This document shows positions 4,000 through 27,124 of a DNA stretch of 32,426 bases, one piece after another; the stretch's first letter is position 1; each line of letters starts with the position of its first letter. Source of the DNA: Octopus bimaculoides (lineage: Eukaryota); the NCBI RefSeq assembly GCF_001194135.2, contig NC_068986.1, forward strand, positions 106,992,738 through 107,025,163. Reading direction: 5' to 3'. Under the pieces are notes generated by a model that was given only the letters and a program-made list of their open reading frames with translations, did no database searches and had not been told where the DNA came from. A program made the translations under genes and the position numbers.

Positions 4000-4440
<441 letters not shown>

Positions 4441-4832
4441 GTTTTATTAGTTTTATTTTTTAGCGTTCACAAATTTTAGCAACCAAATTACGCTTATACC
4501 GAAACCTGGATGCGATTTACCCCTTCACACCAAATCTTTTTTGTCTGCCAAAAGCACGCAGGTAGGAGAAACGTTTGTAGAAGAACGTATCAGTAAACTG
4601 GTATCACTATACTCCCCACACTTCTCTGTTTTATAAAAACAGGAGTGGGAAAAGAGATAAATGATCCGACTGAATTTCATATATGAATTAGAAGGAAGCA
4701 AAGGATATGATTTCAGTTGGATATTATTGAAACCATTTTTACCTTCTTCTAGTTTATAATAAAACTACCTTAGAAAATATCCACTGTACAAAACTGCTGG
4801 GTAGATATTGTAATTCCTGTCTTTTTATTTAG

Positions 4833-4967
4833 AGTGTGATGGATGTTGCTACGGGAACATATGCCGTGGTGAGGGACATACATGGTTGGAAAAGTTGCCC
4901 CGGAAGTGTTCTCGGAAACAATGCAAACGTGTTTGCGGTCGTTGGAAAGCAGTTGAAATAAGAGAGT
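4833..4967 (+). CDS. Gene A coding exon 2: Cys-rich module 1 (ECDGCCYGNICRGEGHTWLEKLPRKCSRKQCKRVCGRWKAVEIRE)
   Basis: Acceptor ctttttatttag ends at 4832; 135-bp open phase-1/phase-1 exon; donor T|GTAAGT at 4968. Same length, phase and Cys spacing as 19641-19775. Confidence 0.9.
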
Positions 4968-5279
4968 GTAAGTTGATAAAGAAATCTTTCGTTTCCTCTA
5001 TTCACTACGTGTTTTGATGTATCAAAATCCCAATGAAAGTTTATATTTGCTTTGCTTTGTTTTGAATGCGATAAGCTTTGTTCAGTAAGTCTTACTTATT
5101 GACCAACGTTAACTGTGAGGCTGATGTACCCCAACACACAGACGATTATATCTAACCCAGTAAACAGCGGATCTTTAGTTTATTGAACTGAACTGACGAA
5201 AACAAATATCCAACAGATCTCAGCGCTTAAACAAATGTGTCTAAATATTGCAAAGCCTTTTTGCAGGCGCACTAACGAT

Positions 5280-5385
5280 TCTGGTTGGCTGGTAGAATCG
5301 TTAGCACGTCGAACAAAATGCTTAGCGGCATTTCTTCCGGATCTTTACATTCTGAACTTATATCCCACTAAATTAAACTTTACTG
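5280..5385 (+). mobile_element. Old SINE fragment shared with gene B intron 2 (20105-20300)
   Basis: GGCTGGTAGAATCGTTAGCACGTCGAACAAAATGCTTAGCGGCATTTC matches the head of the SINE at 20647-20874 and recurs at the equivalent intron position in gene B. Confidence 0.7.
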
Positions 5386-7134
5386 TTTGTATATATATGT
5401 ATATATAACATGTCTTTTTGTATATATGCCTATGTGTATATTCTTGTATTTGCATGTGTGTATGTGTGTGTTTCTGTATGAGTTGTTTGTAGAAAAAGTA
5501 TTCTGTCACTGTGATTATCAATATCTACGAGCTTTCCCAAATTCAAGGGATAGTTTTCTTTAAAAAAAAAACAGACTTATATTTATCTTAATTAAACATA
5601 TATATATCATTAACTAATTTACTCTGGAAATGTATGCTTTCTTTTTAAACAAGAAATTTCTTTTTGATTTAAGTTCTTTTTCCCATTTTATACATCAACT
5701 TTTAATTTTAATTGTTTTTATTACTTTTTTTATTCATATTTACAGTTTGTTTTTAAACCGTTAGTTGACACAACCAATGAAATTCAAACGTGTATCTGTC
5801 AATGTAAAGTACATCATAATATAAATTATACGTCTAACCTAAATTCTTGTTCCATTCTGGATTCCAACTTCCCAACGAATGGGAACGTGAAACTCTGAGT
5901 AGCAGCATTTTGTGATACATTTGCGATGGTTTTGCAGCTTCAGTAGTAAAGCATATTACTCTACCTCCGGTGTTCGAGTACTATTTTTTCCCACATTCTT
6001 TCACGTTTATGTGATTACTTTGGTATATATATATATATATATATACATATAAATAGATTCAAGGTTGAACATGGTACTTATGCGTAGGCACCCGAATATC
6101 GTATCCTAAAAGGATAGGTGATCAAAATCAAAAAATAAGCAACACGGATTTCAAAGGTGATTGCAGTACGCACGTTTCATGCTACTCCAATTTATTTAAG
6201 TAATGCGAGCATTACATTAAATGCAATATGAAGAGCAATTTTCAGCTGCACGAAAATGCAGAAAATTACTGTAGAAAAGACATATTATAAATGTGGCAAC
6301 ATTTCAAATCTAAGTGGGAGAGAGAATACATAAAAATCCAAATGTGAGGAAGAATACATAAATCCATCTTGACATAGCCGAGTCTATCAGGCTAGTAATT
6401 GATTCTAGACAAAAGTTTTAACCTTCTCAGATTTTATTGTTTCTTATCTAGTGGTGATAGCATAAGGGACAATTACTTCTAAAGAGAGGGAAGGTGTAAG
6501 CAGTATGCATGGACAAGGCTATAAAATGTATTAGAATATAAAGGTTTCACTGGTCAGAGTAGTATCAGGTCATTTTACTACTACCAAAATGTTGAGGAAT
6601 TAATGTTGAGGAATTACAACCCTAGGTATATGGGTCAAATAGGTTTTTTTTTCTTTTATTCTGAATAGAGTAACAGTATAGTGGTACAGATATACATATA
6701 TATATATATGTGTGTGTGTGTATACGTTACAACCAAAAGTATAACGATACTATTGTACAAACTGTGGTCCCACACACACAATTTATAAATGAAAGCTAAG
6801 TCCACGTATTCATACATACACTCATACTAATAAGAATGCCTATAAACGGCAACTCCTCAACCGAAATAAGCACAAAAATATACCCGAGTTACTTCCATAA
6901 ATGTGATGCGCAGCACCTCTATTCTTCGCTGTTACATTAAACTTTAGTCAAGATAACATTCAGTTTTGTCATCATGTCCGCAACCTACCCAAACACATAA
7001 ACAAATCATATGAGAACAATAGTCAGTAACATTATCTAGCGTGGTTTAATCCGTAGCATTTTGTTCAAGCAACATTGAGGACACATTAAGGTGTTGAGTA
7101 GGTTCACTCAATGATAACTTTCATAAGGTGTGAA

Positions 7135-7360
7135 GGCGCATGGCTTACTGGTTACGGTATTCGGCTCGCGGTCATGAGTTCGATTCTTGTCAGTGCGTTT
7201 TGTTCTTGAACAAGACATGTTAATTCGCGTTGCCGCAGTGCATTCAACTAGCAAAAATGAGTCGTAACTGTACTTCAAGAAATCAGTCTTATCACATTCT
7301 GAAGCTCCCTCAGAACTACGTTAAGGACGCACCACTGGAAACCTCGACGTCGCAACCAGT
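7135..7360 (+). mobile_element. Degraded tRNA-derived SINE
   Basis: Box A TGGCTTACTGG, box B GAGTTCGATTC; shares AGAACTACGTTAAGG and a CTGGAA(A/C)CCTCGACGTCG motif with the SINE at 23658-24043. Confidence 0.65.
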
Positions 7361-7594
7361 TTCACTCATGGAACCGAATATGATGCTTCGAAATAACCTT
7401 TCATTCTACTGGTGTATAAAGAAACTGAAATGTCTTCTACCTGTCCTTAAAAACGAGGTACAAACTATACAAACAAATACTTTACTCTATTCCGATTTTA
7501 GGAATATGAAGTTAATATCAAAAGTGCATAATAAGTTACGTTAAATAAACATATATACCATATCAGAATATCACTAACTGAAATCATGAGTGGG

Positions 7595-7790
7595 TAAAAT
7601 AGATAGCACGCCAGGCATTTTTGCTTACTGGAAATTTTACTGGCTTTCTGACTCGAATTCAAACTTCTCCGAGGTTGATTTTGCATTCGATCACTTCCAG
7701 GTCGATAAAATAAGTACCGGTTAAAAATTAGAATCATTGAAATCGACTTACAGGCTCCCCTGAAATTGTTGACATTTTGCCAAAGTCTTG
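7595..7790 (+). mobile_element. Old SINE shared with gene B intron 2 (about 24080-24270)
   Basis: TAGCACGCCAGGC...TTTGCATTCGATCACTTCCAGGTCGATAAAATAAGTACCGGTT; colinear copy immediately upstream of exon 3 in both paralogs. Confidence 0.7.
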
Positions 7791-7864
7791 TGCCAGTATA
7801 GGCATAATTATGTGGTAGAAAAATTTTAATAGCATAATCAATACATTCATCATTTTATCAACAG

Positions 7865-8007
7865 ATTGTCGGTTGATTAATGCCGTATGTTCTAAGATAG
7901 ACACATCTTATGTGACCATAAGTGATGACAAATGCTGGAATTACACCTGCAAATATCAGGGAGATTCAAAAATTATAACCACGGTAGAATATGCCGGATT
8001 ATGTTAA
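7865..8007 (+). CDS. Gene A coding exon 3: Cys-rich module 2 ending in a stop (YCRLINAVCSKIDTSYVTISDDKCWNYTCKYQGDSKIITTVEYAGLC*)
   Basis: Acceptor ttttatcaacag ends at 7864; frame open in phase 1; TAA at 8005-8007; exon continues to donor GTGAGT at 8013. The CWxYTCxY motif is shared with 24346-24496. Spliced CDS 73+135+143 = 351 nt = 116 aa + stop. Confidence 0.88.
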
Positions 8008-8235
8008 CGTCTGTGAGTATATTTTTTAAGCTATTTGATTTAACTCATACAGTTCATTTTCTCCATATCACAGCTGCGTTATGCTTGTAACACTTCCCTT
8101 TCAGTTCTAAATTTTACTCCAGTTAGCTCTAATTTAGATGTGAAAGTACAAATCTTAGCATTTCCAGTTGAATGATAGAACTATTAAAATCGCTTATTTC
8201 TTTTTCAATTTAAAACGTGTCTGTTTCTTTTTCAG

Positions 8236-8475
8236 GGAAGCCCATGTCAAGTTAAGCTAACTATGATTACGGCCACTTAAATGGATTACCTAAACAAATA
8301 GACAAATGTATTTATCTATTTTTAAATGTGGTTCTTATTCCATCGGTTTCCTTTGTGGGAAACCGAATACACGGACAAAATATAGAACAAACAAACACAC
8401 AAACACATTATATATATATATATTTATATACACACACACACACACACACACACGCACGCACACACACACACGCAC

Positions 8476-8508
<33 letters not shown>

Positions 8509-8626
8509 NNNNNNNNNNNNNNNNNNNNNNNNNNNNNNNNNNNNNNNNNNNNNNNNNNNNNNNNNNNNNNNNNNNNNNNNNNNNNNNNNNNNNNNNNNNN
8601 NNNNNNNNNNNNNNNNNNNNNNNNNN

Positions 8627-8669
<43 letters not shown>

Positions 8670-8886
8670 CAGTAAATTTTGTAATCGTTACCAATATAGC
8701 ATAAGACTTCACCCCAAAGGATCATTGATTAGATTCCTTAAGGATCTAATTTTGGGTCATTTGTTCTAATGGAAGCCATTCCTGAGGAAGTACCAAACAT
8801 CAGACATCCAACGGATCAGTCGCTGGATAGAGTTGAGCACAAAAATGTTCACATCGAATGATAAATAATTAAATAAATGGAATAAA
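8236..8886 (+). other. Gene A terminal exon (3' UTR; homolog of gene B coding exon 4); 3' end uncertain
   Basis: Acceptor ctgtttctttttcag ends at 8235; starts GGAAGCCCATGTC versus AGAAGCCCATATC in gene B. AATAAA at 8872-8877 and 8881-8886 are candidate poly(A) signals; an N gap lies inside. Confidence 0.6.
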
Positions 8887-9044
8887 AATCGAGCGTGTTG
8901 GAAGTCTCTATCGTTTTTAAATATACAAATTTGAAACCTTGGAAATATATATATATATATAGATAGATAGATAGATAGATATATATATACTTATATATAT
9001 ATATACATATGCACACACATACACAAACACATATAATATATATG

Positions 9045-9290
9045 GTATTTATTCTTTTATTCCTTTATTTGTCTTAGTCATTGGACTGCGGCGGTGCTGG
9101 AGCACCACCCTAACCCTAACCGTAGCCCTAACCCTAACACTAACTCTAACCCTAGCCCTACCCTAACCCTAACCCTAACCCTAACCCAGGACTTAATATT
9201 TGTAAATCAAGTACATATTCTATTGATCTTGTTTGCCTAAACACTAATTTCCGTGGACATATAGACACCAATATCCGTTGTCAAGTGATG
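9045..9290 (-). mobile_element. SINE of the 1030-1420 family, interrupted by a telomeric array
   Basis: Reverse complement aligns with CATCGCTTGACAACCGATGTTGGTG...AAGTCCTGGG...GGTGCTCCAGC...AAAAGA of the first copy. Confidence 0.7.
9108..9187. repeat. Interstitial telomeric repeat (CCCTAA)n, about 13 units, partly degenerate
   Basis: ccctaaccctaaccgtagccctaaccctaacactaactctaaccctagccctaccctaaccctaaccctaaccctaaccc. Confidence 0.92.
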
Positions 9291-9582
9291 GGCGGGCGGG
9301 CGTTTTCTTATGCATATATTTGACGAATTTATACAAAGATTCTTTCTACCGAATTTATCTAAATTCTTTTTGATCGATTCATGATAGGAAACTAAACTTG
9401 CGCACGGATATTCCATGCATATTCCATAAATATTTGTCGTATCTGCGGGAATGTTATGCAGACAAGAGTACTCTACACACTGGTGCTGAATGGTCATTTC
9501 CAGAAAATTCATCAATATCTCTGAGGGTCATAATATAAGACTAATTCTTCGAATCCTTTCTTTTAACAGTATTCACATGTTC

Positions 9583-9642
<60 letters not shown>

Positions 9643-9646
9643 CAGA

Positions 9647-10709
9647 CAGGGTACGGAGGGAGGTAAATCATCGACATTTTACATTTTTAATTTCGCGCAT
9701 ACGCATCGTTTGTTTCGGATTTTGTCGACTAGACAGCAACCTCTGCGAGAAGAACAGCACCATGACGCAATTCACTCTGCCAGAAATTAGGAATCGACAT
9801 GCTGTTCTGCTTGCTGTGCTCCATGCTGTACTAGCCGCGCCGGAAGCTCCAATACGAACATCTCAGAGTATTTGCGTGTGAATCGGAAGACAGAGCAATA
9901 TGAGAGTGATATGTACCGAGATTGATAAAAATTAAATATCCACTCAACATCATGGTGTCTGGAACGATCACAAGTGATGGCGATATTGTGCTTGCATTCA
10001 TCTTCCCAAACGACCTCAGACTCAACCCTTTCGCCCACATCAAGTGCCTGAAGGAGGTAGTGCAGCCCTGGGTCAAAAGGGTAGCTACTGAAAGTTTCTA
10101 CGTATGGCAACAGGATTCTACACCATGCCACACAAGCAGTAGAATCCGTTCATGGTTGTCAGAAAATTTCTGCGACCATTCCACCCCTAACATCTGGCCA
10201 CCTAACTCCCCAGGCAGAAACCTTATTGCTTATTACATGTGGGGCACAGTTAAACGAGAGACCCACAAAACTCCTCGTAACATCAGAAATGAACCAAAGG
10301 CAAGGATTATGGCAGTATTCCCCAACGTAAACACGGAGACGGTCCAGAAAAGTNNNNNNNNNNCTAACTCCCCAGGCAGAAACCTTATTGCTTATTACAT
10401 GTGGGGCACAGTTGAACGAGAGACCCACAAAACTCCTCGTAACATCATAAATTAACCAAAGGCACGGATTATGGCAGTATTCCCCAACGTAAACACGGAG
10501 ACGGTCCAGAAAAGTTGCAGGAGATGCCGAAGTCATCTGGAGGCTATGGTTCAAGCCAATGGCGGGTTTTTTTTTTTATTGAAGAAATTTACTCTTTAGT
10601 ATTTCAATATAATTTTTTATGTAATTTTGGTAAATATATCTGTTAAAATGAGATGTCAGTTATTTTCATTTTTGTCTAATTTAGACGGCAGTTTATTCAC
10701 CGTACCCTG
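9647..10709 (+). mobile_element. Tc1/mariner (maT/DD37D-like) DNA transposon, degraded
   Basis: Terminal inverted repeat CAGGGTACGG (9647-9656) / CCGTACCCTG (10700-10709); ORF 9922-10455 carries WQQDSTPCH and IWPPNSPGRNLIAYYMWG motifs. Confidence 0.85.
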
Positions 10710-11049
10710 GATATTATATCAGAATAAAATTTATAACCTTATAATTAACTTCGCTACGCAATTTTATTTGTTAATATTTGTTTCCGCTTTATAACAGTTT
10801 TGTGTATCTACGTTTTTATAGAAAGACAGATTTGCCAATCGGAAACCGAAGCCAAAGTCAAACCAGTTTACTATGAACTGATAAAGAAGGAAATAATTAT
10901 ACCGGGTTAAGATTTAATTATTGTTATATAATCATCACTGAACTACGATTGAGAAATAATGTAATAAACTAATTACTGATCCAACCCTGCAGCTTCTTGT
11001 TTTGTCTTTCCTATGTATCCACTGGGATTTTAATGACAGTTAGAAATCA

Positions 11050-11830
11050 TTACAACCAGGATTTGATTAAAAGGCAACATTTTTTTACGTCCTGCTGATC
11101 ATTCGTCTGAGACCTTTCGGAATTCTTCAAGGCCACCATAACAAAATCATAACAGACACCACACGGACACACTTTATCTCATCACCAAACTACCGCTTAC
11201 ATTCAGTACTCTTATACACAAACCCCGTTGCCCAGCACAGCTTCATAGCTATCGCTTACACTCATGCACACGCATACAGCCTCTCCTCCACCTTATTACC
11301 ACTTAACAGCTCTAAATACACCAACACGTCCACACATACATAATGTATTACACTCTCAGTCCACGTACACCCATCCGCGTAAACACACAGACGTACAAAA
11401 TTGCAATTTATCTCTACTTTAAACCCACATATGAACCATACCTGTGCTAGAATTTATACCTTGCTCATATACCCGCCATTTCCACTGTGCTTTACAGCTC
11501 TCCTTAACTTGCTAAATTGCTCAAGACAATAGCTCATCTTTGCTACTGACACTCCATGTCGCTTATACAAAAAAAAAAACTTACAGACACTTCCAACCGC
11601 ACAAAGACACACGCCCCAGCTACTCTAGACTGTAACTTCCCTCGTTAACACACAAAATCTTATGAAGCGTCTACAAAAATATACATGCATGCGCACTGTT
11701 TTCTTTCTCTTCCTTCTTATCACCCGTTGTTTCGCTCTCCACGTTTCCTGTTGTCTTCATAATGCGTTACTTCTCCGTAGTAGTTAGGTCCCACTTCTCC
11801 GCTCTTTTCCGCTGCTATTTTACCTTTGAA
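11050..11830. repeat. Unclassified dispersed repeat, also at about 26380-27120 and partly at 1-45
   Basis: Colinear blocks such as GATCATTCRTCTGA..CCT...GG.ATTCTTCAAGGCCACCATAACA and TACACCAACACGTCCACACATACATAATGT occur downstream of both genes. Confidence 0.7.
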
Positions 11831-11978
11831 ATTAAATGCTGGATTTTACAAATTTCACCCACTTACAAACTCCTTTCTACAATCAACGTATTTGTCTCTG
11901 TACAATGACGGCATTTAACCATTTGCGTGCGCTACTACATAACCCTCAGATACTTTTTAACTGTGCTTCGTTTCTGAT

Positions 11979-12018
<40 letters not shown>

Positions 12019-12095
12019 ACACACACAAACGCACACTAACACACACAGACGCACCCAGAAACACACAAACACAGGCATATGTATACATTTACATG

Positions 12096-12600
12096 TACGA
12101 GGGGTACCGAAAAGTAACGGGAAATGTTCGTTTTTGTAGTTCAATGTTCCGCCGTTAGAATCGACTCGATGCGATCCCCGAGTAACAGTTGTCGATCGAC
12201 GTCATCGACTGGTGTCGTACTGCCACGTCGTGCGCCTTTGGTTTGCAGTGCCTCTCCCCATTTCATCGTTTTTGCAATGGCTGAAACGAAGGAACAGCGT
12301 GCTTGCATGAAATATTTTTCTGCTTGGAAAAACGACGGCCAACACAGTTGGCATACCTCAAAGAGCTTACACGGCTGCTGCCATTAGCAAAACACAATCT
12401 TACGAGTGGTTTCCACGTTTTAGGAATTATCAAATGTTGCTTCAAGTCCAACCTTGTTCTGGACCGCAATCACCGAACAATTGACGAGCTTGTTGATATA
12501 CCTGATCTCTCTTGGAGCTCTTGCCTACGAATTTTGGGCGAAGAATTGCGAATGAAAAGAGTAACAGCAAAATTTGTATCTTCGAAGAATTGCTTCTATC
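12096..12600 (+). mobile_element. Mariner 5' fragment (TIR + HTH region)
   Basis: Starts TACGAGGGG; MAETKEQRACMKYF; RNHRTIDELVDIPDLSWSSCLRILGEELRMKRVTAKFV; frameshifted. Confidence 0.8.
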
Positions 12601-12808
12601 TACGGGCTGATCACCTGACAAGTATACATGAAATGTAGTTTCGAGTCTCATGCTCAGCCTTCTTCTAACTTCTAACTAAAGGGTTTTTCAATCTACTGTT
12701 TGAATTTCATTATTTATAGACTCAGAAAGCGCCCCAAAATCAATGTTTCAAAACAGAAGTTTTTGCATCCTTTCGTAAGTTTATGAAATATTTATATTGT
12801 TAATGATG

Positions 12809-12809
<1 letters not shown>

Positions 12810-12903
<94 letters not shown>

Positions 12904-12980
12904 AAGAAGAAGAAGAAGGAGGAGGAGGAGGAGGAGGAGGGGGGAAGGGGAAGAAGAAGAAGAAGAAGAAGAAGAAGAAG
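12810..12980. repeat. Compound microsatellite (AAT)n-(GAA)n-(GGA)n-(GAA)n
   Basis: Read directly; it produces the poly-I/R/E/L ORFs in the track. Confidence 0.97.
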
Positions 12981-13187
12981 ATATGATCGCATGATACATA
13001 ATACTAACATTAGAATCGGAATTAAGTAAACCAAATCAATTAAAGAAATTAATTATTTATAAACTCATACTTAAATTAACTTTTATTTTAAAGAGTGAAA
13101 AGAAGAATAAACGAATAAAATTATCGACAACGGAATATATCAAATTAGATTACAATGAAATCAGGAAATAAATGATAGAACAATAGC

Positions 13188-13236
<49 letters not shown>

Positions 13237-13428
13237 CATCATTGAGTGAGAAAGCAATGCATGCAATTCTCCTCAACACATGGCTATGATGCTCCCCCAC
13301 TACTTCTGCTCCTGATCAGAGATGCACATATCGTCAGCCACCAAGGGACATACTCAACTGGTTAAGGTCAAACAACTGACAAGCAAATCTGTGGTATTGA
13401 GCAGAATATTTGCTGTAGCCCATCTTTT

Positions 13429-13469
<41 letters not shown>

Positions 13470-14569
13470 CAACAACAATAATAATAATAATTGATATGTC
13501 TCGCATTATGAGAGCGTATTTCGTTGTCTGTGTGACTGGTCGTACGGCGTATCTCGCTGGCTGACATTGCTTGCTGTGTTTGCCAACTATTTATCAGTAG
13601 TGGAATAGCTCACTTCTCACTTGGGGACGTCCACCACAATACTTCCTACTTTTGAGATTTTTTATATACTTTTCTTTTTGGTTTCATATAACATTATTTT
13701 TCTTCGGAATGCCGCAGGTAGTACCAGTCTACTTAGTTTACCGGTAGCGCTACTAACTCATAGCGACCTGACTAAAATCCTTCACTTATTATCATCATTA
13801 TTTTTTTCTTCCACAGAGAATTATTTTTCACTTCAGAATGCTGCAGGTAGAACCAGTCTACATTGTTTACTGGTAGCGCTACTAACACATAGCGACCTGA
13901 CTAAAATCTTTCACACGGATTTATATCATTCTTCACTGTGTGTAGTTCAGTTCTGCATTAGCGTTCCAGTTTTATCACACAATTTGTTTCTTCAACAGGA
14001 TTTGTTTTTCAGTGCGTGTGTACGAATCCTCGTCGCCTCTTTTATGTTCCGTATTATGACGGCGTATTTTGTCATCTCCGTAGCTGGCCCGCACGGTGTG
14101 CCACTCCGACTGATATTGCTTGCTGTCTCTATCCACTATTTATTAGTACTGGAACAGAACAGCCCACTACTAAATTGGGGGTATCCGCAACAACAACAAC
14201 ANNNNNNNNNNNNNNNNNNNNNNNNNNNNNNNNNNNNNNNNNNNNNNNNNNNNNNNNNNNNNNNNNNNNNNNNNNNNNNNNNNNNNNNNNNNNNNNNNNN
14301 NTAATCAGTTTGTCTGTCCTTGTTTGTCCCCTCTATGTTTAGCCCCTTGTGAGCATTGAAAAATAACAAGTATATATACAGTAAATGAATTATAAATATT
14401 TATATATATGTGTATACATATATATATACATACATTTGCATACACACATATACATACAGATACAGACACACATTTTTTTCACTTTTGACACGTAATACAG
14501 GCACAGTGTAAAAGAGGAGAGATTGCACCGGGCTCACGTTAGGCAAGAAGTTGAGAATTTATATACTGC

Positions 14570-14689
14570 ATGGTCGGTAAGTCATATATAAAATTTGAAT
14601 GAAATCGGTTGGGCAAGGTTCCAGTTTTAGTAATGCACACAGACATAGACAAACACACAGACAGACATTGTCGGTTTTATATATAGAGA
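14570..14689 (-). mobile_element. Non-autonomous Helitron-like 5' terminus fragment
   Basis: Minus strand A|TCTCTATATATAAAACCGACAATGTCTGTCTGT...CCGATTTCATTCAAATTTT, the typical start of invertebrate non-autonomous Helitrons. Confidence 0.55.
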
Positions 14690-15719
14690 TATATATGTTT
14701 GTTATACATATACATATATATGTGTATGTATATGTGTATCTGGCCGTAAAGCCTTTTCTGTTTGTTTTCCTGTCTTGTTTTTTGTCCGCCACTACATTTC
14801 TCCATGGCAAGATTTAATTTGCGTATACAAATTTAATCTGCGGTCCATGGGATGAGCCGTTTTAACGATGCGTCCTGCCCAAGCTCGTCGAAACGCCGGT
14901 GTTAAAACGTGGGTAGCTGATGAAGTAAAATGATCTCTATGTGGCTCGTGTGTTTTCTCCTCTACGTTTGTTTGCAATGTCCTGTACCCAGATATGCACC
15001 TATACATACAGGTGGATGTCGGTATGCACATACCTGTACGTATATATGCATATACTCATTTACTATTTGTTTATATATNNNNNNNNNNNNNNNNNNNNNN
15101 NNNNNNNNNNNNNNNNNNNNNNNNNNNNNNNNNNNNNNNNNNNNNNNNNNNNNNNNNNNNNNNNNNNNNNNNNNNNNNNNNNNNNNNNNNNNNNNNNNNN
15201 NNNNNNNNNNNNNNNNNNNNNNNNNNNNNNNNNNNNNNNNNNNNNNNNNNNNNNNNNNNNNNNNNNNNNNNNNNNNNNNNNNNNNNNNNNNNNNNNNNNN
15301 NNNNNNNNNNNNNNNNNNNNNNNNNNNNNNNNNNNNNNNNNNNNNNNNNNNNNNNNNNNNNNNNNNNNNNNNNNNNNNNNNNNNNNNNNNNNNNNNNNNN
15401 NNNNNNNNNNNNNNNNNNNNNNNNNNNNNNNNNNNNNNNNNNNNNNNNNNNNNNNNNNNNNNNNNNNNNNNNNNNNNNNNNNNNNNNNNNNNNNNNNNNN
15501 NNNNNNNNNNNNNNNNNNNNNNNNNNNNNNNNNNNNNNNNNNNNNNNNNNNNNNNNNNNNNNNNNNNNNNNNNNNNNNNNNNNNNNNNNNNNNNNNNNNN
15601 NNNNNNNNNNNNNNNNNNNNNNNNNNNATATATATACACACATAATATATCAACATACATACACACATATATATATATTCATATATACAGGTAAAAGTAT
15701 ACACACACACACACGCACG

Positions 15720-15750
<31 letters not shown>

Positions 15751-15867
15751 ACACACACACACACACAAGAACGCAAATATATACGTATAGCATGCACTCA
15801 CTTCTTTGAAATAGAAAACAGTTACGAATTCAGTTACGTTTAATTACATTTGTACTTCCAGATCAAA

Positions 15868-15934
15868 ATGACACAACTACTTCCTTCTTGTTTGCTGATT
15901 TTGGTTGCATTAACAGATGTTATGCCAAACCCCA
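15868..15934 (+). CDS. Gene B coding exon 1: signal peptide (MTQLLPSCLLILVALTDVMPNP)
   Basis: Acceptor tttgtacttccag ends at 15861, ATG at 15868, hydrophobic core CLLILVAL, phase-1 donor A|GTAAGT at 15935. 43/57 nt identical to gene A over the first 19 codons. Confidence 0.88.
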
Positions 15935-16337
15935 GTAAGTTTCCTTTCATATATGAAAATATATTGCCTAAGTACAATATTTACACGGATGAATGTATAT
16001 ATGAGTAACCACACAATCACATGCACACAATCATGTATAAATGAGTAACGAAATGTACAGGTGTCAATTCATTACGATCATTGGACGCAATCGTTTTATT
16101 TGATTAATGAAAACATTAAATCATTTCTGAAGCCTTTCTCCTCAGATGACCGCATAGTCTTCAAACCTATAGGTTACAACTACTGCTTTAACATATTCAC
16201 ATGAATAATGGAACTCAAAATATTTACACTGTTTATTGTCATATCTCTGGCAGTATGAATTTAGAAAGTAATGCATACCTTGTCAAGTGTACTATAATTT
16301 AGAGAGGGAATGCAGCAGTACCCAATTCAACGGAATC

Positions 16338-16383
<46 letters not shown>

Positions 16384-16879
16384 TTGTGTATGTGTATAAG
16401 ATAGAATGCATGGTGGGTGATTAAATGTAGTATAGAAGGAAAGAAATAAGATAAAGAACAAACTTGTTTTACACGACTAAAGAATATATTAGAATCATCA
16501 CAGCAAAATTATTATACAATATTATATAACAATTGATCTTTGTTACTTCCAACATAATAACCGGTTTCGCTAACGCTTTTCAAATTTTGTATTTTGGATG
16601 CAATTCTGAATTAGAGATTTTGTTTCGTAGAGGGGATAATTGGCATCCAAGGTGTTTTTCAGTAAATGGAAGATAAAACTGTAAATTTCAATATTGGTTT
16701 ACATTTGGTTCTGGCTTATATTCTACAATAGATGAGGTAAATCTTTAATTTTCAGTATGAATTTATATTTAACACTGGCTTATATATTTCGATAAATGAT
16801 GCCTCTTTATTTAATTGTACTTGTGTTGAGGTCCAAATACTAAATTGATATAATGAGAAAATGAGGAATTGTGGTTGTA

Positions 16880-17745
16880 ATTGTTCCGTACAGTTGTCAA
16901 TGCTTTCACTGACATATTTCTGGCGATATCGTGTCATCCCTTATATAGTTTTTATGACGGCCTGAGCATCAGATTACCTAAATGAGGTTTTCAGAGGCGC
17001 AAGAGAAGTTGCTTTTAATTTTGAATTTTTGACCTTGTCTAAAATGGAACTCTGATCCTTCCAAAAGACTGAGACATTCTTCGCAGTTAGGATGATCACA
17101 CTTTTTCCTCTTGCGTCCGTTATTCTGGACTATAATTTAGCATTTGCGAGAGGTTTCTTTAATATCTTTGGTTGTTTACTGCTTTTACTAATTTTATGGA
17201 TACGTACAATTTCCTGCGCTTTGGGATCCTTATGGAGAATTGGGAGATTTCGGACTATGATGTTAAACGCTTCTTTGTTTCTGGGGTTTTATGTGGAAAC
17301 GTAGGTTAGTGTTTTCAGAGCAAGTGTATTATTATGTTCCACATATCTTAATGTTTTATGTCAATCGATTTTGCACGTTTTACCTCTTCATTTATGAGTG
17401 CATTGGGCAGTGTTTTTCCTTCAATGCTTTTCCCGTTTTTTTTTTCTTTGTTCATTTCCTGTTTAAATTTTTTCGTTACACAATTTTCGGTTTTGCTAAC
17501 CCTGGCCTTCTTCGTGTTTTTCAACAGTGGCTCCGCGGCATTTTTTATACACCACCCCAGGCTGTTTTCCTTTACCTGGCAGCTGATTACACCTGTCCCA
17601 CCCTTTCTTCTGGAGAAGTACAGCCTACCGGTGTCACGTTTAAGGGGGAAAGCTCCGTGTACTGTCAACATTTTCTTGGACTTGTTATCCATTTTCTTCA
17701 TTTCAGTATTTTGTCATTTTATAATACCTGCTCCAAACCGAATTG
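16880..17745 (-). mobile_element. 5'-truncated R4/Dong-like LINE fragment (RT C-terminus) in gene B intron 1
   Basis: ORF 17348-17701 reads KKMLTVHGAFPLKRDTGRLYFSRRKGGTG, resembling the R4-clade thumb motif; abuts a (TTA)n tract at 17750-17778. Confidence 0.75.
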
Positions 17746-17783
17746 ATTACTATTATTATTATTATTATTATTATTATTGATAA

Positions 17784-19144
17784 TCATACCATAGTGGGCG
17801 TAATGTCCGTCAGTCTGTCTGTACCCCCCCCCCACTGATTTTCTGATTTCGGAGAAAAAAAATCGTACTCGCTACAGCTCTATCTGGGATTGCAGCAACA
17901 TTGCTGCACAATGACCGGACATTTCTTTCTCGGTTCAAAGTGCCTAGAAACATAACACCAGAGTCCTGCGGCAACATGTCATCTCAGGATGCAACTGCGC
18001 AACACTTCAGAATGACTAGTCTAATAATAGTCGATGAAGTTTGCCAAGGCGACAAGACCATATATGAATGTTTGGATCGTTCTCGACGCAATATCAGATC
18101 AAACGAATCCGTTTGACGGAACATGTGCTCTTTTTGTAGGCGACTGGAAGTAGATTATACCAGTTGTTAAACGTGGTAGTCGAGTCCAAATAGTACAAGC
18201 CACCTTGAAAACATCGTACATCTGGAGGTCTGTGACGGAGTTGAGTCTAAAGAAAAACATGAGGTTACGAAATCCTTAAGATATACCTTACACAACCTAT
18301 TTAAGTGACATCGGTTCCGGACAATGTTCGTTCACTGACCCACTGAGGAAAGTGATTCGAATTTGGCCAGATTTTGTAATCGAGACGTCATCTATTTCCG
18401 AAATATGCAAATTCGTCTTTAATGATTTACGTGAATGCTATAAAATCGCATCATGGCTGTGTTGGGGAGTTGTCATCGTCTCGACCAGTGAAGTGGTAAA
18501 CAGTGTGAATGAGAACATGGTCAGCAACTTACCTGGGGAAGGTCGAGAGTACTGACGAAAGCTACCACCAGTACCCACAGAATTTCATGAACAACTTAAA
18601 TCCATCGGGATTGTCACTCCATAAAATCAAATTGAAAAATAACTGTCCGATGATATTCCTCAGGAATTTTGATCCGGCCAGTAGACACTGCAATGAAACA
18701 TGATACACGGTATCAGAACTAAATTCCAATGTTATCGAAGCTGTGATTGCAACTGGCCCCGCAATGGTAAACGCGTGTTCATTCCGCGGATAACGCTTAT
18801 ATCAACCGATAACGAGTTTCAGTTCCCATTTAGACGCAGGCAGTTTCCTATAAAACTGTCTTTCTCATTTACAGCAAACAAGACACAGAGCCAGAGTTTA
18901 GATCGTATAGGTGTATTTTTACTCAGTCTAATGTTTACACACGGCTAGTTATACGTCGCTATGTGTAGAGCAACGAAATCCAGTAATTTGAAAATTAGTG
19001 TCGACCACACACAAAATATTGTCTACAAGGAAGTTTTGTAATCGTATTGATATCAAAATCTATTGACACATGTTTCAATACATACTGTTCTTATGATTTC
19101 CCTCTCTCATTTTATACCTCCATCGTGGATGGGTAGATTTGCTA

Positions 19145-19145
<1 letters not shown>
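17784..19145 (+). mobile_element. Internally deleted Helitron carrying a PIF1-type helicase pseudogene, no Rep domain
   Basis: Probable 5' A|TC at 17784; SGIAATLL, LIIVDE, GDWK, KNMRL, VFIPRITL, FRRRQFPIKLSFSFTANKTQSQSL, HG*LYVA, NIVYKEVL*; hairpin CCATC-GTG-GATGG (19120-19132) followed by CTAG|T (19142-19145). Confidence 0.88.
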
Positions 19146-19207
<62 letters not shown>

Positions 19208-19640
19208 GCATTATCATTATTACTATTAGCTTTATTTTTTTTTAGCGTTCATGACTTGTGGCCAGCAAAAAAACGCCTACACCGAAACCTGAAATCCGGT
19301 GTTTCCTATCTTTATGCGATTTATCATTTCACACCAAAACCTTTTGGTTTGCCCAAACCACGCTTGTAATTAGGAGAAACCTTTGTAGAAGTACGTACCT
19401 GTCCATTAAATTGGTTTCAATATATTCCTCACACGTATTTGTTTTATGGAGACAGGACCGAGAAAAGAGGTAAACGATCCGACTGAGTTTCATATATGAA
19501 TTAGAAGGAAGCGAAAATTATGATCACACTTGGATATTATTGGAACCATCTTTAACAATGCTAACTTATAATAAATCTGCCTTGTAAAATATCTAATATT
19601 CATTAGTGGATACTATTATAATGTATGTATTTTTCTTTAG

Positions 19641-19775
19641 AGTGTCCGGGATGTGACGACGGCATTTTGTGCCGCGATATTGGAGAAGAATGGGTGGAAA
19701 AGATATCCGAAACATGTACCAGGAAAATATGCGACGAGTTTGATGGTGAAATGAAAATAAAGGCAACACATTTGT
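19641..19775 (+). CDS. Gene B coding exon 2: Cys-rich module 1 (KCPGCDDGILCRDIGEEWVEKISETCTRKICDEFDGEMKIKATHL)
   Basis: Acceptor ttttctttag ends at 19640; 135-bp phase-1/1 exon; donor T|GTAAGT at 19776. Lies within ORF 19625..19903 of the track. Confidence 0.9.
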
Positions 19776-20540
19776 GTAAGTTGACAAAAAAAATTTATTT
19801 CCTCTCTTCACTGCGTGTTTTGATGCATCAAAATCCCAACGAAGGTTTATATTTGCTTTGCTTTGAATGTGATAGGCGTTGTTCGGTAACTCTTAATTAC
19901 TGACCATCTGCCAGCGTTAATTGTGAGATTGATGTACCCTAGATCACAGACGGTCAATTCAACCCTAGTAAACGACGGATTCTTCGTTTATTGAACCTAG
20001 GTAACGAAATGTAATGTGATCTAGACCAACACAGTAGGGCTAAATCTCAGTGCGTAACGAAATGTATCTAAATAGCGTAAAGCATTTCGGAAGATGCACT
20101 AACGTTTCTGGTGGGCTGATAGAATCGTTAGCGCAACGAACAAGATGCTTAACGGCATTTCCTTCGTATCTTTAGGTCCTGAACTTATGTCCCGCTAAGT
20201 TCAACTTTACTTTTCATCCCGTCGAGGTCGAAAATTAAGGTACCAGTTAAATATCGGAGTCGACGAAAATTACTAGTTGCCTCCCCTAAAAAATTGCTCG
20301 CATGAAAACCTGTAACGGATAGCCCGCCCTTTCATGTTGGTATTGGTAATTTAAATGCCATGGAAACAGGGTAACCGCTATTATAAATCCTAGGGCTAAA
20401 GACAAACAGAATAAACAATTCTCATATTTCAATGCTTAACTTCAATTATAAGTTACATGGATGGTATGTTTCAAAGATTGTGCTTTTGTGAGAATTTCAA
20501 AAGTTTATTTATATCTGTATGTATCATCAATTGACATCAG

Positions 20541-22075
20541 TACGAGGTTCGGCTAAGTTAGTAGGCTGACTAAGACATTCTCTTGGAATGTGAGCAAATG
20601 ACGTTGGTTTCCTAGCATATTTCCCCTTGCCGTCAACACACTTATTTCTTTATTGCCCACAGGGGGCTAAATATAGAGGGGTCAAACAAGGACAGACAAA
20701 GGGATTAAGTCGATTATATCAACCCTAGTGCGTAACTGGTATTAATTTAATCCACCCCGAAAGGATGAAAGGCAAAGTCGACCTCGGCGGAATTTGAACT
20801 CAGAACGTAGCGGCAGATGAAATACCGATAATCATTTCGCCCGGCTTGCTAACGTTTCTACCAGCTCACCGCTGACACACTTATTCCATCGGTGCCGCAG
20901 TCATTGGATCCCATTGCTGAAAATGGTTTTACTCTTTTGGTCCAAAAGCCATCAACAATACATATGACGTCATCAATCTCCACAGCGACATGGCTCTCAG
21001 TCAAGCGTTTTTCCATGTTGGGGAGGTGGTGATAGTCAGGCGCGGCGGAAAGAAGAGAAAAGAGAGGATGAGCAACCCTTTTCAAAGCCATATTCACAAC
21101 AGCCATTGAATCCAATGATTTGTGCGCTAGAGCAATGTCCTGAAGGTCCAGTTTCTTCAATCTTCCTTGGGTCTTGGTGCTTGGGGTTTGGGGGTTTGGT
21201 CTTCATAGCCTTTCGTAATCACTTCCCCATCATTCGTGAGTCCTTTTTGAAGATAATCGATAAAGTTCTTTACATTTGCATCCCCACAAAATGAAGATTT
21301 CTCCTCCTCTGCAAATGAAAAAACCTTGTCATTCTTTGGAGTAGGAAATGTGGAGTGTTTCCACCGCACGGAGGTTTTGGTTGTTGCCTCATGCATTGTC
21401 TCATTGTCTCTCCAAGTGCTGAACCCAATACTATACCTAGGTTAGAACACGTTCAAGGAAACCAGCTGGATGTGCCTCTAATAATATCAGATTTTCCTGT
21501 GCATTTTGCATCAGTTGTCAGAAGACTTGACACCTACCGAACAGAGACCTTTGCCCTGCCAAGTCCATCGTTCAGAATATACTCAAATCTCTCATGGGGA
21601 ATGGGAATAGCATTGGCTGTTTGATTTATAGTTATTCGCCATTTATCCATCAGCATGTTACGAACATGATCAATGCTTTCGTCGGTAGTGGGTGTTGCAG
21701 GATGTCCAGATCTTAGATCATCCTTACTATTCTCTGTTCCCCTCCTAAATTCAACTGCCTACGTTTGAACTGTAAGTTGACAAAAATGGATCGTCATCTA
21801 CTAGTGTAGCAATTGTGTAAGCGTAATGTATCATTCGGAGCTAAACCCTCTTTTCTTCCGGTACTTCATACTAAACTTTCCCCATGTTCAAGAGAAGTCT
21901 CAACTAGTCGAAGTCTTCTTTGAATAGTCAGATGACTGTTGACTTGAACAACAAAAAACAACAAAAATAAATACAGACATTATGATGAAACGCTGAACTG
22001 AATGCATGCAAGACTTCACAGCTTCAGGATCACTCCCTCACAGACAGCCTATGAACTTTTCAGCCTACACTCGTA
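20541..22075 (-). mobile_element. Full-length but decayed mariner element with a nested SINE, in gene B intron 2
   Basis: Imperfect TIRs TACGAGGTTCGGCTAAGTTAGTAGGCTG versus reverse complement TACGAGTGTAGGCTGAAAAGTTCATAGGCTG (22044-22075); remnants DDLRSGHP, IDYLQKG, LQDIALAHKS, AHPLFSLLSAAPDYH, GIQ*LRHRWNKCV. About 1.3 kb without the SINE. Confidence 0.85.
20647..20874 (-). mobile_element. Young SINE inserted into the mariner with an 11-bp target-site duplication
   Basis: ACACACTTATT at 20636-20646 and 20875-20885; minus-strand GAGTTCAAATTCC box B. Confidence 0.88.
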
Positions 22076-22126
22076 TGTGTACGCATCTCGAACATGAATG
22101 TTTGTTTACACAGCTGAAGTTAATTG

Positions 22127-23300
22127 TATTAGGTTGGCAACTAAGTTCCTGCCATTTTTCTTTATTTAAATTTTTTAAAAGGTTTAATAAACAATAACAA
22201 TTAATCAATCAATAGTGTATTCAGCCTTGTTGTCTACAACTTCTTGCCAACGTTCAACAAGATTTTCAATACCACGTTGGTAGAAATCACCTTATTTCGA
22301 CTCGAAAAATTGGATCCAACCAAGCTCTCAATTCTGCATCAGTATTGAACGAAACTCCGCGCATAGCGTTTGAAAGAGATCGAAAGAGGTGGAAATCCAC
22401 TGGTACCAAATCAGGAGAGTACGGCGTGTGTGGCAGCATTTCCCAGCCACGCGTTTGAATGGCTTCTCTGGTCATATTGGCGATATGAGGGCGAGCGTTG
22501 TCATGGAGTAGAACTCCATATTGACGATTAAGTATGTTCTCTTGAATAGCCGTATTGTGTCGTTTCATCTCTTGAACATAGAGTTCCGCGTTGACCGTTT
22601 GGTTCCGTTCAAGCAATTCGTAATGGATAATCCCTTCCCAGTCCCGCCATACGAAACAACCTCGTTTTACGCAGATTAAGATCTTGTTTCACGCGCGGTA
22701 TCGCTTGTTTACCGGGGCTAAGCCATTGCTTACGCTGCTTCATATTGATGTACAGGCACCATTTTTCATCGCCAGTTACGATTCGGTAAAGAAATCGTTA
22801 CTTGTGTCCATGAGTTGAGCAGTGACGAGCAAGCAAACCAGCGGAGATTGTGGCTCGTTCTTTTTTGTTGTTGTCATATTTCTGAACCTTTCCCATCAAT
22901 TAAAGATGCTTCTCTATAGCAGTGTGGAAGCATTCCATTTTCTCTGCTAGTTCCCTTGTCGTTTGACAAGAATTTTCGTGCAAAAGTTGGTTCAATCGCT
23001 CTTCATCGAACTCAACTGGACGGCCAGAACGAGGCGCGTCTTTGAGGTCAAAATTTCCATTTTTGAACTTGGCATACCAATCNNNNNNNNNNGAGGTCAA
23101 AATTTCCATTTTTGAACTTGGCATACCAATCACGAGCGGTTCTTTCAGCTATGGCACCCTCTACATACACAGCACAAATGTCGCGAGCAGCTTCTGCGGC
23201 CTTAGAACCTTGATTAAAAGCAAAAAGAAGAAAGTGTCGAAAATGCTCGTTTTTCTTAACTTGACATACCATTTTAATGATCTGAAAATAAACAAAAATT
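22127..23300 (-). mobile_element. Mariner (DD34D) transposon, degraded
   Basis: TIR TATTAGGTTGGCAACTAAGTTCC at 22127; KNEHFRHFLLFAFNQG, DAPRSGRP, LLHDNARPH, HTPYSPDLVPVDFHLFRSL; other TIR not found. Confidence 0.92.
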
Positions 23301-23657
23301 AACTAAAGTTAACTACAAAAAAAATAGATTCCAAAATGATTCAAAAATAGAATTCTCAAAAAGAAAAAAAAAATAGATTCCAAAATTTATCAATTATAAA
23401 ATATATTAAGAAGTGGATAGTACGTTTAAATATTTAAAGAATAAATATTTAGAATCATCAGAATTTAATATAATGTATAAATGATGCAGTAAAATGCTAA
23501 TTCTCTTGTACCAAATTAAAGTGGTCACATGTACTTAGCTTGCATACAAGATATGAAAACGATTGCCTTAATTTATTCCGATTTTAAGAATATGGACTCA
23601 ATATAAAAAAAAGTGAATAATAATTTACGCTAAATAAACATATATACCAGGATATCA

Positions 23658-24043
23658 GTGGAGACGCAATGGCCCAGTGGTTAGGGCAGCGGACTCGCGG
23701 TCATAGGATCGCGGTTTCGATTCCCAGACCGGGCGTTGTGAGTGTTTATTGAGCGAAAACACCTAAAGCTCCACAAGGCTCCGACTGGGAATAATGGTGA
23801 ACACTACTCTTTCACCACAACTTTCTCTCACTCTTACTTCCTGTTTCTGTTGTGCCTGTAATTCAAAGGGTCAGCATTGTCACACTGTGTCACGCTGAAT
23901 ATCCACGAGAACTACGTTAAGGGTACACGTGTCTGTGGAGTGCTCTACCACTAGCACGTTAATTTCACGAGCAGGCTGTTCCGTTGATCGGATCGACTGG
24001 AACCCTCGACGTCGTAAGCGACGGAGTGCCAACAACAACAACA
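23658..24043 (+). mobile_element. tRNA-derived SINE specific to gene B intron 2
   Basis: Box A TGGCCCAGTGG, box B GGTTTCGATTCC, (AAC)n tail; TSD-like ACCAG(G/C)ATATCA at 23646-23657 and 24044-24055; the site is empty in gene A near 7555. Confidence 0.85.
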
Positions 24044-24345
24044 ACCAGCATATCACTAACTGAAACAATGAGAGGGCAAAATAGTTAGCACGTCGGGCAT
24101 ATTCACTTATCGGAAATTCTTCTAGTTTTCTGATTAGAATTTAAATTTCTCCGTAGTCGAGTTTGCATTCGATCCCTTCCAGATTGATAATATAAGTACC
24201 AGTTAAACATTAGAGTCATTGTAATCGACTTACCCGTTGCATGAAATTGCTGACCCTTTTCCAAATTCTTAGACCAGTGTAGGCATAATTATGTCATAGA
24301 AATAGTTTTCATAGAATAATTAATATATTTTCTTATCAACAACAG

Positions 24346-24496
24346 ATTGTAAGTGGGATGATGGCGGATGTGTTGCTAGAAGCACAAAATGGACTGTCAT
24401 CAGGGAGGACGGGGTTTGCTGGATTTACACCTGCAACTATAAAGAAATGACAGACGTTAAAGCCGAAAAGAAATTTCTCGGAAAATGTTTACCTCC
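24346..24496 (+). CDS. Gene B coding exon 3: Cys-rich module 2 (YCKWDDGGCVARSTKWTVIREDGVCWIYTCNYKEMTDVKAEKKFLGKCLP)
   Basis: Acceptor tcttatcaacaacag ends at 24345; 151-bp open exon, phase 1 in and phase 2 out; donor CC|GTGAGT at 24497. Confidence 0.88.
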
Positions 24497-24713
24497 GTGA
24501 GTATATATTTGAAGCTATTTAATTTACTTCTTATATTACATTTTCTCAATATCATCGTTGCGTTGTCTTTGTAACAACATTTCCTCTTCTGTTCTAAATT
24601 TAGCTCAAACTTAGAAGTGAAAATACAAATCTGAGCATTTCGAGTTGAAAATGTATACTGTTAAAATTCCTTTTTTTTTAAATTTAAAATGTGCTTGTCT
24701 CTTTGTTTTTCAG

Positions 24714-24798
24714 AGAAGCCCATATCACACTGCTTACTATTTCTCAAGTAGAGCATGACAGCGGCCATACTTTCAACATACAGGATATTCCATTATAG
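24714..24798 (+). CDS. Gene B coding exon 4: Cys-free C-terminal tail (PEAHITLLTISQVEHDSGHTFNIQDIPL*)
   Basis: Acceptor ctttgtttttcag ends at 24713; in-frame after the phase-2 junction; TAG at 24796-24798. Spliced CDS 67+135+151+85 = 438 nt = 145 aa + stop. Confidence 0.75.
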
Positions 24799-27120: not shown

Positions 27121-27124
27121 ATAT

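Follow-up and report, generated by a model that had tools for sequence, protein, structure and literature searches.

The DNA analyzed here, a stretch of 32,426 nucleotides (nt) that we refer to as the window, belongs to chromosome CM046606.1 of Octopus bimaculoides (GCA_001194135.2; about 106.99–107.02 Mb), with 0 mismatches over 26,559 overlapping bases. Self-comparison of the window revealed two tandem paralogs, copy A and copy B, which lie on the + strand in collinear homologous units about 15.65 kb apart. The homology is distributed in blocks that pair, always on the + strand, positions 148–316 with 15802–15961, 4355–5387 with 19143–20214, 7459–8249 with 23545–24727, and 10711–11684 with 26093–27126; because it extends into the DNA lying 3′ of the polyadenylation (polyA) signal of copy A (10976–11690, + strand, homologous to about 26310–27126), a unit of 11.5 kb or more must have been duplicated. 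The exons encoding the mature proteins of these two genes are less alike than the introns that surround them, and the analyses presented below support diversifying selection as the cause of this unusual relationship.

The gene models of both copies were rebuilt by splice-aware reconstruction from the window sequence. They share the same architecture, made of a signal-peptide exon, two mature-protein exons, and a 3′ exon, with AG/GT splice sites throughout and coding introns that are all in phase 1. In copy A (all features on the + strand), exon 1 (217–289, with the ATG at 217) encodes the signal peptide MTRLFPVCVLLMIVITVVMTECPN, exon 2 (4833–4967, flanked by ag and gtaagt) the first cysteine-rich module of the mature protein, and exon 3 (7865–8012) the second, with a TAA stop at 8002–8004. 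Exon 4 (10822–10975, AATAAA at 10963–10968), recognized by its conserved acceptor and by its homology to copy B and to the tail of the paralog P0003 (QKRDLPIANRSENQ), is the homolog of the exon that encodes the tail in other family members and is now 3′ untranslated region (UTR). Copy B, also on the + strand, corresponds to LOC128248175 (protein P0001). Its exon 1 (15868–15934), an exact match to P0001 residues 1–22, encodes the signal peptide, and exons 2 (19641–19775) and 3 (24346–24496) encode the first and second cysteine-rich modules; tblastn and splice reconstruction of P0001 place the last coding exon of the NCBI model, an alternative one that encodes the tail QVIEDTQNKTA, at 25454–25490, for which copy A has no equivalent. 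The ancestral exon 4 of copy B, identified by homology to exon 4 of copy A and to the tail exons of paralogs, lies at 26205–26310; it keeps its acceptor and its polyA signals (AATAAA, 26270–26301), and a TAG would be read at 26206–26208 if splicing took place there. The C-terminal tail was lost separately in the two copies, in A by a change from TTA to TAA (8002–8004), at a place where copy B and P0003 have TTA (Leu), and in B by a TAG that is the first complete codon of exon 4. Both nonsense changes fall just after the last cysteine. In the two copies, an acceptor-like tttcag/ttccag directly precedes ATCAA(T/A)ATG (205–216 and 15856–15867), in copy A before ATCAATATG; it suggests a noncoding 5′ exon upstream of the ATG, which for copy A would fall outside the window.

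The precursors have 116–118 residues, that is, a signal peptide followed by about 95 residues with 10 conserved cysteines, to which mature copy A adds two. The products are secreted proteins of about 11 kDa, with five probable disulfides. Their mature net charges are +6 (A) and −3 (B), a shift that may reflect different targets. No protein is on record for copy A, and a word-index protein search with A gave no candidate; the same search with copy B returned only B itself.

Between the two copies, exon 2 is identical at 75 of 135 nt (55.6%) and at 16 residues, the exons being equal in length and aligned without gaps, and exon 3 at 87 of 148 nt (58.8%), one codon indel being needed; these figures are exactly those of a preliminary description of this DNA. 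Pooled, the two exons are identical at 162 of 283 sites (57%), corresponding to a Kimura two-parameter distance (K80) of 0.64. The alignable intron sequence is identical at 1135 of 1508 sites (75%, a figure that includes a misaligned insertion of a short interspersed element [SINE]; K80 0.30), which already differs markedly from the exons (Fisher p = 2e-9), and at 79% of 1317 sites when the SINE insertion is left out, the intron distance K ranging from 0.24 to 0.30 and locally reaching 0.36. The drop in A–B identity coincides exactly with the exon boundaries: the flanks of exon 2 are 78–79% identical (287/367 and 337/426), those of exon 3 70–73%, or 79–81% with the B-specific SINE insertion set aside. 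The 3′ exon and the DNA downstream of it (10976–11690, 78%) are 77–78% identical, with K80 of 0.28 and 0.26, respectively, so that introns and 3′ exon are less diverged than the mature-coding exons.

The compared intron segments of copy A, all on the + strand, are the 3′ end of intron 1 (4461–4832, homologous to B 19229–19640, 78% identical), the 5′ end of intron 2 (4968–5387, homologous to B 19776–20214, 79%), the 3′ end of intron 2 (7564–7864, homologous to B 24046–24345, about 79–81%), and the 5′ end of intron 3 (8013–8250, homologous to B 24497–24727, 73–78%). None of these flanks is a dispersed repeat, since each matches only the equivalent position of the paralogs (for 4461–4832, solely positional homologs in every paralog locus), apart from a part of 7564–7864 that is an old SINE, present at one and the same place in A, B, P0002, P0004, P0006, and P0008. 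The preliminary description had opposed 92% identity in an intron stretch to 56% in an exon, a contrast whose direction holds but whose size was overstated, the proper comparison being 79% versus 57%. The stretch in question, at 4995–5070, does contain 5 mismatches, in 64 aligned nt, and the first 60 nt of intron 3 do contain 12; the former, however, includes the single best 45-nt intron window, in a range of identities from 0.64 to 0.93. The intron similarity itself does not result from a choice of short windows, as 79% identity holds over about 1,300 nt. For the signal-peptide exon, the same description counted 43 identical positions in the first 57 nt (75%), and we obtained the same number. 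Identity over the exon is 70%, with a nonsynonymous divergence (dN) of 0.22–0.32 and a synonymous divergence (dS) of 0.26–0.55, indicating that this exon is not specially conserved; it evolves at about the neutral rate and is no better conserved than the introns, unlike the signal region of conotoxins and the mussel MgCRP peptides.

The mature regions were aligned over about 92 codons, with ten cysteines, a tryptophan, and a CW..C motif as anchors, at a divergence t of about 2.5 substitutions per codon. Of 92 sites each, 46 first, 42 second, and 31 third codon positions differ. The Nei–Gojobori method yields a dN of 0.685 and a dS of 0.482 over 92 codons (dN/dS, hereafter omega, 1.42), and 0.712 and 0.494 over the 90 codons of the family alignment (omega 1.44). 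Omega is higher with YN00 (dN 0.84, dS 0.30, omega 2.83), with maximum likelihood (ML) in Biopython (0.86, 0.29, and 2.98), and with our own codon ML under four codon-frequency models (dN 0.84–1.01, dS 0.28–0.32, omega 2.6–3.5), the latter rejecting omega = 1 under all four (p = 0.006–0.014). The nonsynonymous rate thus exceeds the synonymous one whichever estimator is used (1.42–1.45 by Nei–Gojobori and 2.6–3.5 by ML on the full alignment), and dS is 0.28–0.49 and dN 0.7–1.0, where the preliminary description had expected a low dS and a very high dN; its count of 4 synonymous differences among 30 codons for identical mature residues was obtained again. Compared with the introns, dN/K_intron is 2.95 (95% confidence interval [CI] 2.1–4.1), with 0 of 5000 bootstraps at or below 1. 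Synonymous divergence (0.28–0.49) and four-fold sites (2 of 9 differ) match the K of the introns, the 3′ exon, and the downstream intergenic DNA, which implies that the exons have the same age as the introns and that their excess of divergence is specifically nonsynonymous.

To place the two copies in a wider context, we searched for relatives in 1.84 billion representative proteins, scanned with HMMER without a profile, and in a 5.8-billion-protein set, searched with a profile. All family matches come from Octopus: LOC128248056, LOC128248057, LOC128248060, and A0A0L8IDP9 in O. bimaculoides, and LOC115212787, LOC118763691, and LOC118763783 in O. sinensis; neither search detected a relative outside this genus. 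All these proteins are labeled "uncharacterized" and have no Pfam domain, Pfam scans of A and B likewise gave no match at E ≤ 10, and a literature search by locus names gave nothing. LOC128248056, LOC128248057, and LOC128248060 are located on CM046606.1, no more than 280 kb from A and B, so that the tandem pair (15.65 kb apart, collinear over at least 11.5 kb) belongs to a cluster of recent duplicates. All members share the architecture with three coding exons and phase-1 introns, and the 10 cysteines never vary among the 8 genes compared. In exons 2 and 3, A and B share 48–61% identity with every other member, whereas the other members are 54–76% identical among themselves (61–76% without P0003, the P0006/P0008 pair being excluded). 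Because the exons of the other members are more alike than this while homologous intron flanks across the family are still 64–80% identical, A and B are the extreme of a family-wide tendency.

This tendency was analyzed with our own implementation of codon models on a neighbor-joining (NJ) tree of the paralogs, in which A and B are sisters. The family-wide omega is 1.12 (model M0). A two-ratio branch model assigns omega 2.72 to the A and B branches versus 0.89 to the background (p = 0.006 against M0, and p = 0.005 against a foreground omega of 1), and each of the two branches taken alone has an omega of about 3 (p = 0.03–0.05); acceleration therefore affects both copies. In the site models, applied to 8 genes, M2a is preferred over M1a (likelihood ratio test statistic 21.2, p = 2.5e-5), with about 45% of sites in a class with omega 2.7 and 18% in a class with omega 0.04 that comprises the scaffold residues Cys, Trp, and Gly. 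This result is stable to topology and holds without A and B (p = 0.0012). In the likely ortholog pair P0006/P0008, omega is 0.84 and dS (0.16) is close to intron K (0.09–0.15), which supports the introns as a neutral yardstick.

We consider it likely that these features result from a tandem duplication after which positive diversifying selection acted on the nonscaffold residues of both copies. In this scenario, the ancestral gene of an Octopus-restricted family would have duplicated in tandem as a unit of at least 11.5 kb, and introns, synonymous sites, 3′ exon, and downstream DNA would since have drifted at the neutral rate (K about 0.25–0.30), with the scaffold residues (10 Cys, Trp, and Gly) held fixed. 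Most other residues would have been replaced repeatedly in both copies by positive selection, raising dN to about 0.7–1.0, and the exons would have become less alike than the introns because of these replacements. The driver would be a co-evolving or diversifying binding partner, for instance prey or a predator at which a secretion is aimed, a receptor for gametes or pheromones, or a pathogen; the term "arms-race target" used in the preliminary description is plausible in this respect. Several points weigh against this scenario. The Nei–Gojobori estimate of dN/dS, about 1.45, is not significant alone (bootstrap CI 0.86–2.5, one-sided p = 0.08), and since the A/B pair was picked for looking extreme, pairwise p values near 0.01 must be discounted for a winner's curse. 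The codon models rely on our own code, on an NJ topology of paralogs, and on naive empirical Bayes rather than Bayes empirical Bayes site calls, and site-model tests may be inflated when paralogs recombine. In the representative library, a profile search yielded no ortholog of A or B from another species. Copy A has no protein on record and is a gene known here from its sequence. Finally, some intron stretches are kept across the whole family, which makes the introns an imperfect neutral yardstick.

This last point bears on the possibility that the introns are unusually similar, through gene conversion confined to noncoding DNA or through purifying selection, and that the exons show the true, older divergence. 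Several islands close to splice sites are indeed kept across all paralogs, distant ones included, and 126 nt of copy A, in the region 4655–4780, share 89% identity with P0006. A greater age of the exons is contradicted, however, by their synonymous divergence (0.28–0.32 by ML, with differences in 4 of the 30 conserved codons and at 2 of the 9 four-fold sites), which equals intron K, and intron-only conversion predicts dS above K_intron. Moreover, nonisland intron (79.1%), 3′ exon, and the 700 nt past the polyA signal (78%) have diverged like the islands (80.8%), and we found no tract close to 100% identity of the kind that conversion leaves, the 0.64–0.93 range of window identities being that expected from sampling around 0.79. 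We therefore regard this explanation as very unlikely. A mutational cause, in the form of a hypermutation targeted to mature-peptide exons, was once proposed for conotoxin genes, and the Nei–Gojobori dS (0.48–0.49) is somewhat above intron K (0.24–0.30). It should likewise raise dS above K_intron, yet dS obtained by ML and YN00 (0.28–0.32) equals K_intron, third codon positions differ less than first and second ones, and invariant Cys, Trp, and Gly codons are interspersed among hypervariable ones; the probability left to it is very small indeed.

Relaxed constraint is the remaining biological explanation: one copy, most likely A, would be dead and drifting, which would inflate exon divergence. 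The missing protein record of A, its stop codon, earlier than in its relatives, and the family-wide M0 omega of about 1.1 speak in favor of this. Drift has a ceiling, however, of omega = 1 and dN = K_intron, and because the observed dN/K_intron ratio exceeds it even at its lower bound (2.1), relaxed constraint cannot account for the divergence. In addition, the open reading frames (ORFs) of both copies are intact, with good splice sites; A and B retain the 10 scaffold cysteines, the Trp, and the Gly though about 64% of residues differ; acceleration is seen on both branches, not on A alone; and the early stop of A lies directly after the last cysteine, about where the tails of its relatives are probably cleaved at dibasic sites. 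We thus hold loss of function to be highly improbable. As for an artifact, whether misalignment or saturation of short exons or a chance result in a genome-wide scan, the alignment is short (about 92 codons) and strongly diverged, and the pair was selected post hoc. But exon 2 is gapless, exon 3 has a single codon indel, and the alignment is anchored by the ten Cys, the Trp, and the CW..C motif; moreover, independent lines of evidence agree, namely the comparison of exons with introns and of dN with dS, the branch and site models, and the analysis of the family after removal of A and B, and they leave an artifact with very little probability. We also rejected a replacement of exons by those of another paralog, because the A and B exons are no closer to any known member (48–61%) than to each other. 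Positive diversifying selection after tandem duplication hence accounts best for the locus, where duplication, rate contrast, dN above both dS and K_intron, conservation of the scaffold, and acceleration on both branches are all observed.

The conserved intron islands are found near splice sites in all family members, including distant paralogs and the O. sinensis genes, and lie in copies A and B at 4668–4705/19481–19518, 4977–5060/19785–19860, and 8013–8090/24497–24575, the first of them containing the palindrome GAATTTCATATATGAATT. They may serve splicing or regulation in genes with hypervariable exons; an Rfam scan of the whole window, islands included, gave no match, and their exclusion changes the intron comparison little (79.1% identity outside islands versus 80.8% within). 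A young, abundant SINE with a tRNA-like head occupies 23660–24040, in intron 2 of copy B only, and copies of it, 85–91% identical and on both strands, occur in most of the paralog loci that we retrieved, several of them close to family exons. Intron distances taken from BLAST high-scoring segment pairs among all paralogs were not used for the tree, as they cluster at the detection floor of BLAST (K about 0.23–0.29) and some are contaminated by independent insertions of a young SINE (e.g., P0004–P0007, 372/388).

In O. sinensis, members of the family lie at two distant places of CM016864.1 (loci L005, L006, and L007, at 9.86, 10.38, and 96.9 Mb), unlike the located O. bimaculoides members, which are all within 280 kb; a rearrangement could account for this, or else a difference between the assemblies. 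The member at 96.9 Mb, P0008, is probably orthologous to O. bimaculoides P0006. Its NCBI model (LOC118763783) starts at an internal ATG and has a long, unrelated-looking C-terminal extension; because a complete exon 2 with the first three cysteines lies just upstream of the model start (L007 9930–10067), the model appears truncated at its 5′ end.

Assembly gaps interrupt the window in intron 1 of A (553–1029), in intron 3 of A (8509–8626 and 10354–10363), in intergenic DNA (14202–14301 and 15079–15627, the second ending 240 nt upstream of the copy B ATG), and in intron 2 of B (23083–23092). No gap touches an exon or a compared flank of either copy, and thus no reading frame crosses a gap. The two gaps of 10 N, at 10354–10363 and 23083–23092, sit within Tc1/mariner transposase remnants (ORFs 9922–10455 on the + strand and 22287–22616 on the − strand). 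The sequence around them is duplicated, exactly over 39 nt at 23083 and nearly so over about 150 nt at 10354, so that these gaps look like overlaps left unmerged in the assembly, not lost sequence. We also considered, and rejected, the possibility that the two copies are uncollapsed haplotypes, given an A–B intron divergence of 21–25%.

Structural predictions were obtained with AlphaFold for P0001 and for the family member P0007, using a seven-sequence family alignment. Both models (mean predicted local distance difference test 78.9 and 82.4, respectively, with cores above 90) are all-beta and, according to DSSP, made of two repeats of a short hairpin and three strands, each predicted module corresponding to one exon. 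Searches of the Protein Data Bank (PDB) with Foldseek gave pairs of fibronectin type I (FnI) modules as essentially the sole consistent matches (3gxe, 3ejh, 2cku, 1fbr, 2rky, and 3cal); these made up the top 8 meaningful matches for P0001 and the top 17 for P0007, with E-values down to 3e-4, probabilities up to 1.0, and template modeling scores of 0.45–0.56 over about 90 columns. The FnI architecture, in which a two-stranded and a three-stranded antiparallel sheet form modules arranged in tandem pairs, is thus found in the predicted models. FnI modules, for their part, have four cysteines with C-x-C spacing and 1–3, 2–4 disulfides; in the octopus proteins, cysteine number and spacing differ, with five per module-equivalent and C-x4-C (C-x2-C-x5-C-x14-C-x4-C and C-x6-C-x15/16-C-x4-C-x17-C). 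Neither A nor B nor any of the 7 members matches Pfam fn1 (PF00039) at E ≤ 10, and a sequence search of the PDB with the family profile had no match. Because of the missing fn1 match and the different cysteine spacing, we did not place the family among FnI proteins, and predict it to be FnI-like in fold without being a member of the FnI family. To our knowledge, FnI is otherwise found only in chordates. Other candidate families received no support: neither von Willebrand factor type C and single-VWC domains (PF00093, PF15430) nor beta-microseminoprotein (PF05825) gave a Pfam match, and no VWC or MSP structure was present among the Foldseek matches. Members other than A and B have a C-terminal tail encoded by exon 4, with KR/RR dibasic motifs shortly after the last cysteine (P0002, P0003, and P0004), a disposition that suggests processing of the tail by convertases.

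Similar combinations of features are known in other secreted proteins. Beta-microseminoproteins (MSMB/PSP94), which include the squid egg-capsule pheromone, are fast-evolving secreted proteins of about 94 residues with 10 cysteines, encoded by four-exon genes with the signal peptide in exon 1; the octopus genes resemble them in size, cysteine number, exon number, and fast evolution, but differ in cysteine spacing and match neither the PSP94 profile nor an MSP structure. In Octopus vulgaris, a sperm attractant of about 11 kDa that derives from eggs is reported, and it might offer a lead. Vertebrate beta-defensins form tandem clusters in which the mature exon is under positive selection and, in comparison, the signal exon and the introns are conserved, with charge shifts between paralogs. 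The octopus locus is likewise tandem and shows an exon–intron contrast and a charge shift, but fold and size are unrelated, and the Pfam Defensin_beta profile gave a chance-level match (E = 0.25) to one family member only. In the phospholipase A2 (PLA2) genes of snake venoms, introns are conserved relative to mature exons. PMC6062510, which cites Nakashima et al. (1993, 1995), reports KA/KS > 1 and "accelerated evolution" for crotaline venom PLA2 isozyme genes. Like these, the octopus genes are clustered recent duplicates whose mature exons are more diverged than introns and UTRs, with KA/KS > 1 and a preserved disulfide scaffold; fold and animal differ, and PLA2 has an enzymatic and toxic function and venom-gland expression, whereas the octopus genes are known from sequence. 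Closer in taxonomy, the mussel MgCRP-I peptides and conotoxins are secreted cysteine-rich peptides with positive selection established by likelihood ratio tests (PMC4558851). They share with the octopus family a molluscan origin, genes of several exons in which a phase-1 intron follows the signal exon, a mature region that is hypervariable around invariant cysteines, and dibasic sites. However, they have 20–40 residues, three disulfides, and a strongly conserved pre-pro region, as opposed to about 95 residues, five probable disulfides, two modules, and a signal peptide evolving about neutrally (omega about 1) in octopus, where the dibasic site, when present, is C-terminal of the mature part.

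The locus is thus a new example of the known "accelerated evolution" pattern. More speculatively, and with appreciable doubt, the undescribed, Octopus-restricted family of secreted two-module FnI-like proteins might consist of effectors or recognition molecules engaged in an ongoing antagonistic or sexual co-evolution, with different targets for A and B; saliva or venom components, sperm–egg or pheromone proteins, and pathogen-binding factors could all be candidates for such a role. Exons that outrun their own introns are a rare and reliable pointer to molecular conflict or to rapid functional diversification. Few such loci have been described in cephalopods, whose venom, fertilization, and immunity proteins are poorly known, and the present one is a clean, statistically supported case in a lineage-restricted, unannotated family. 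With about 95 residues, the mature proteins are small enough to be expressed and tested for binding partners. If the FnI-like fold is true, the family would also bear on whether FnI is specific to chordates or arose more than once.

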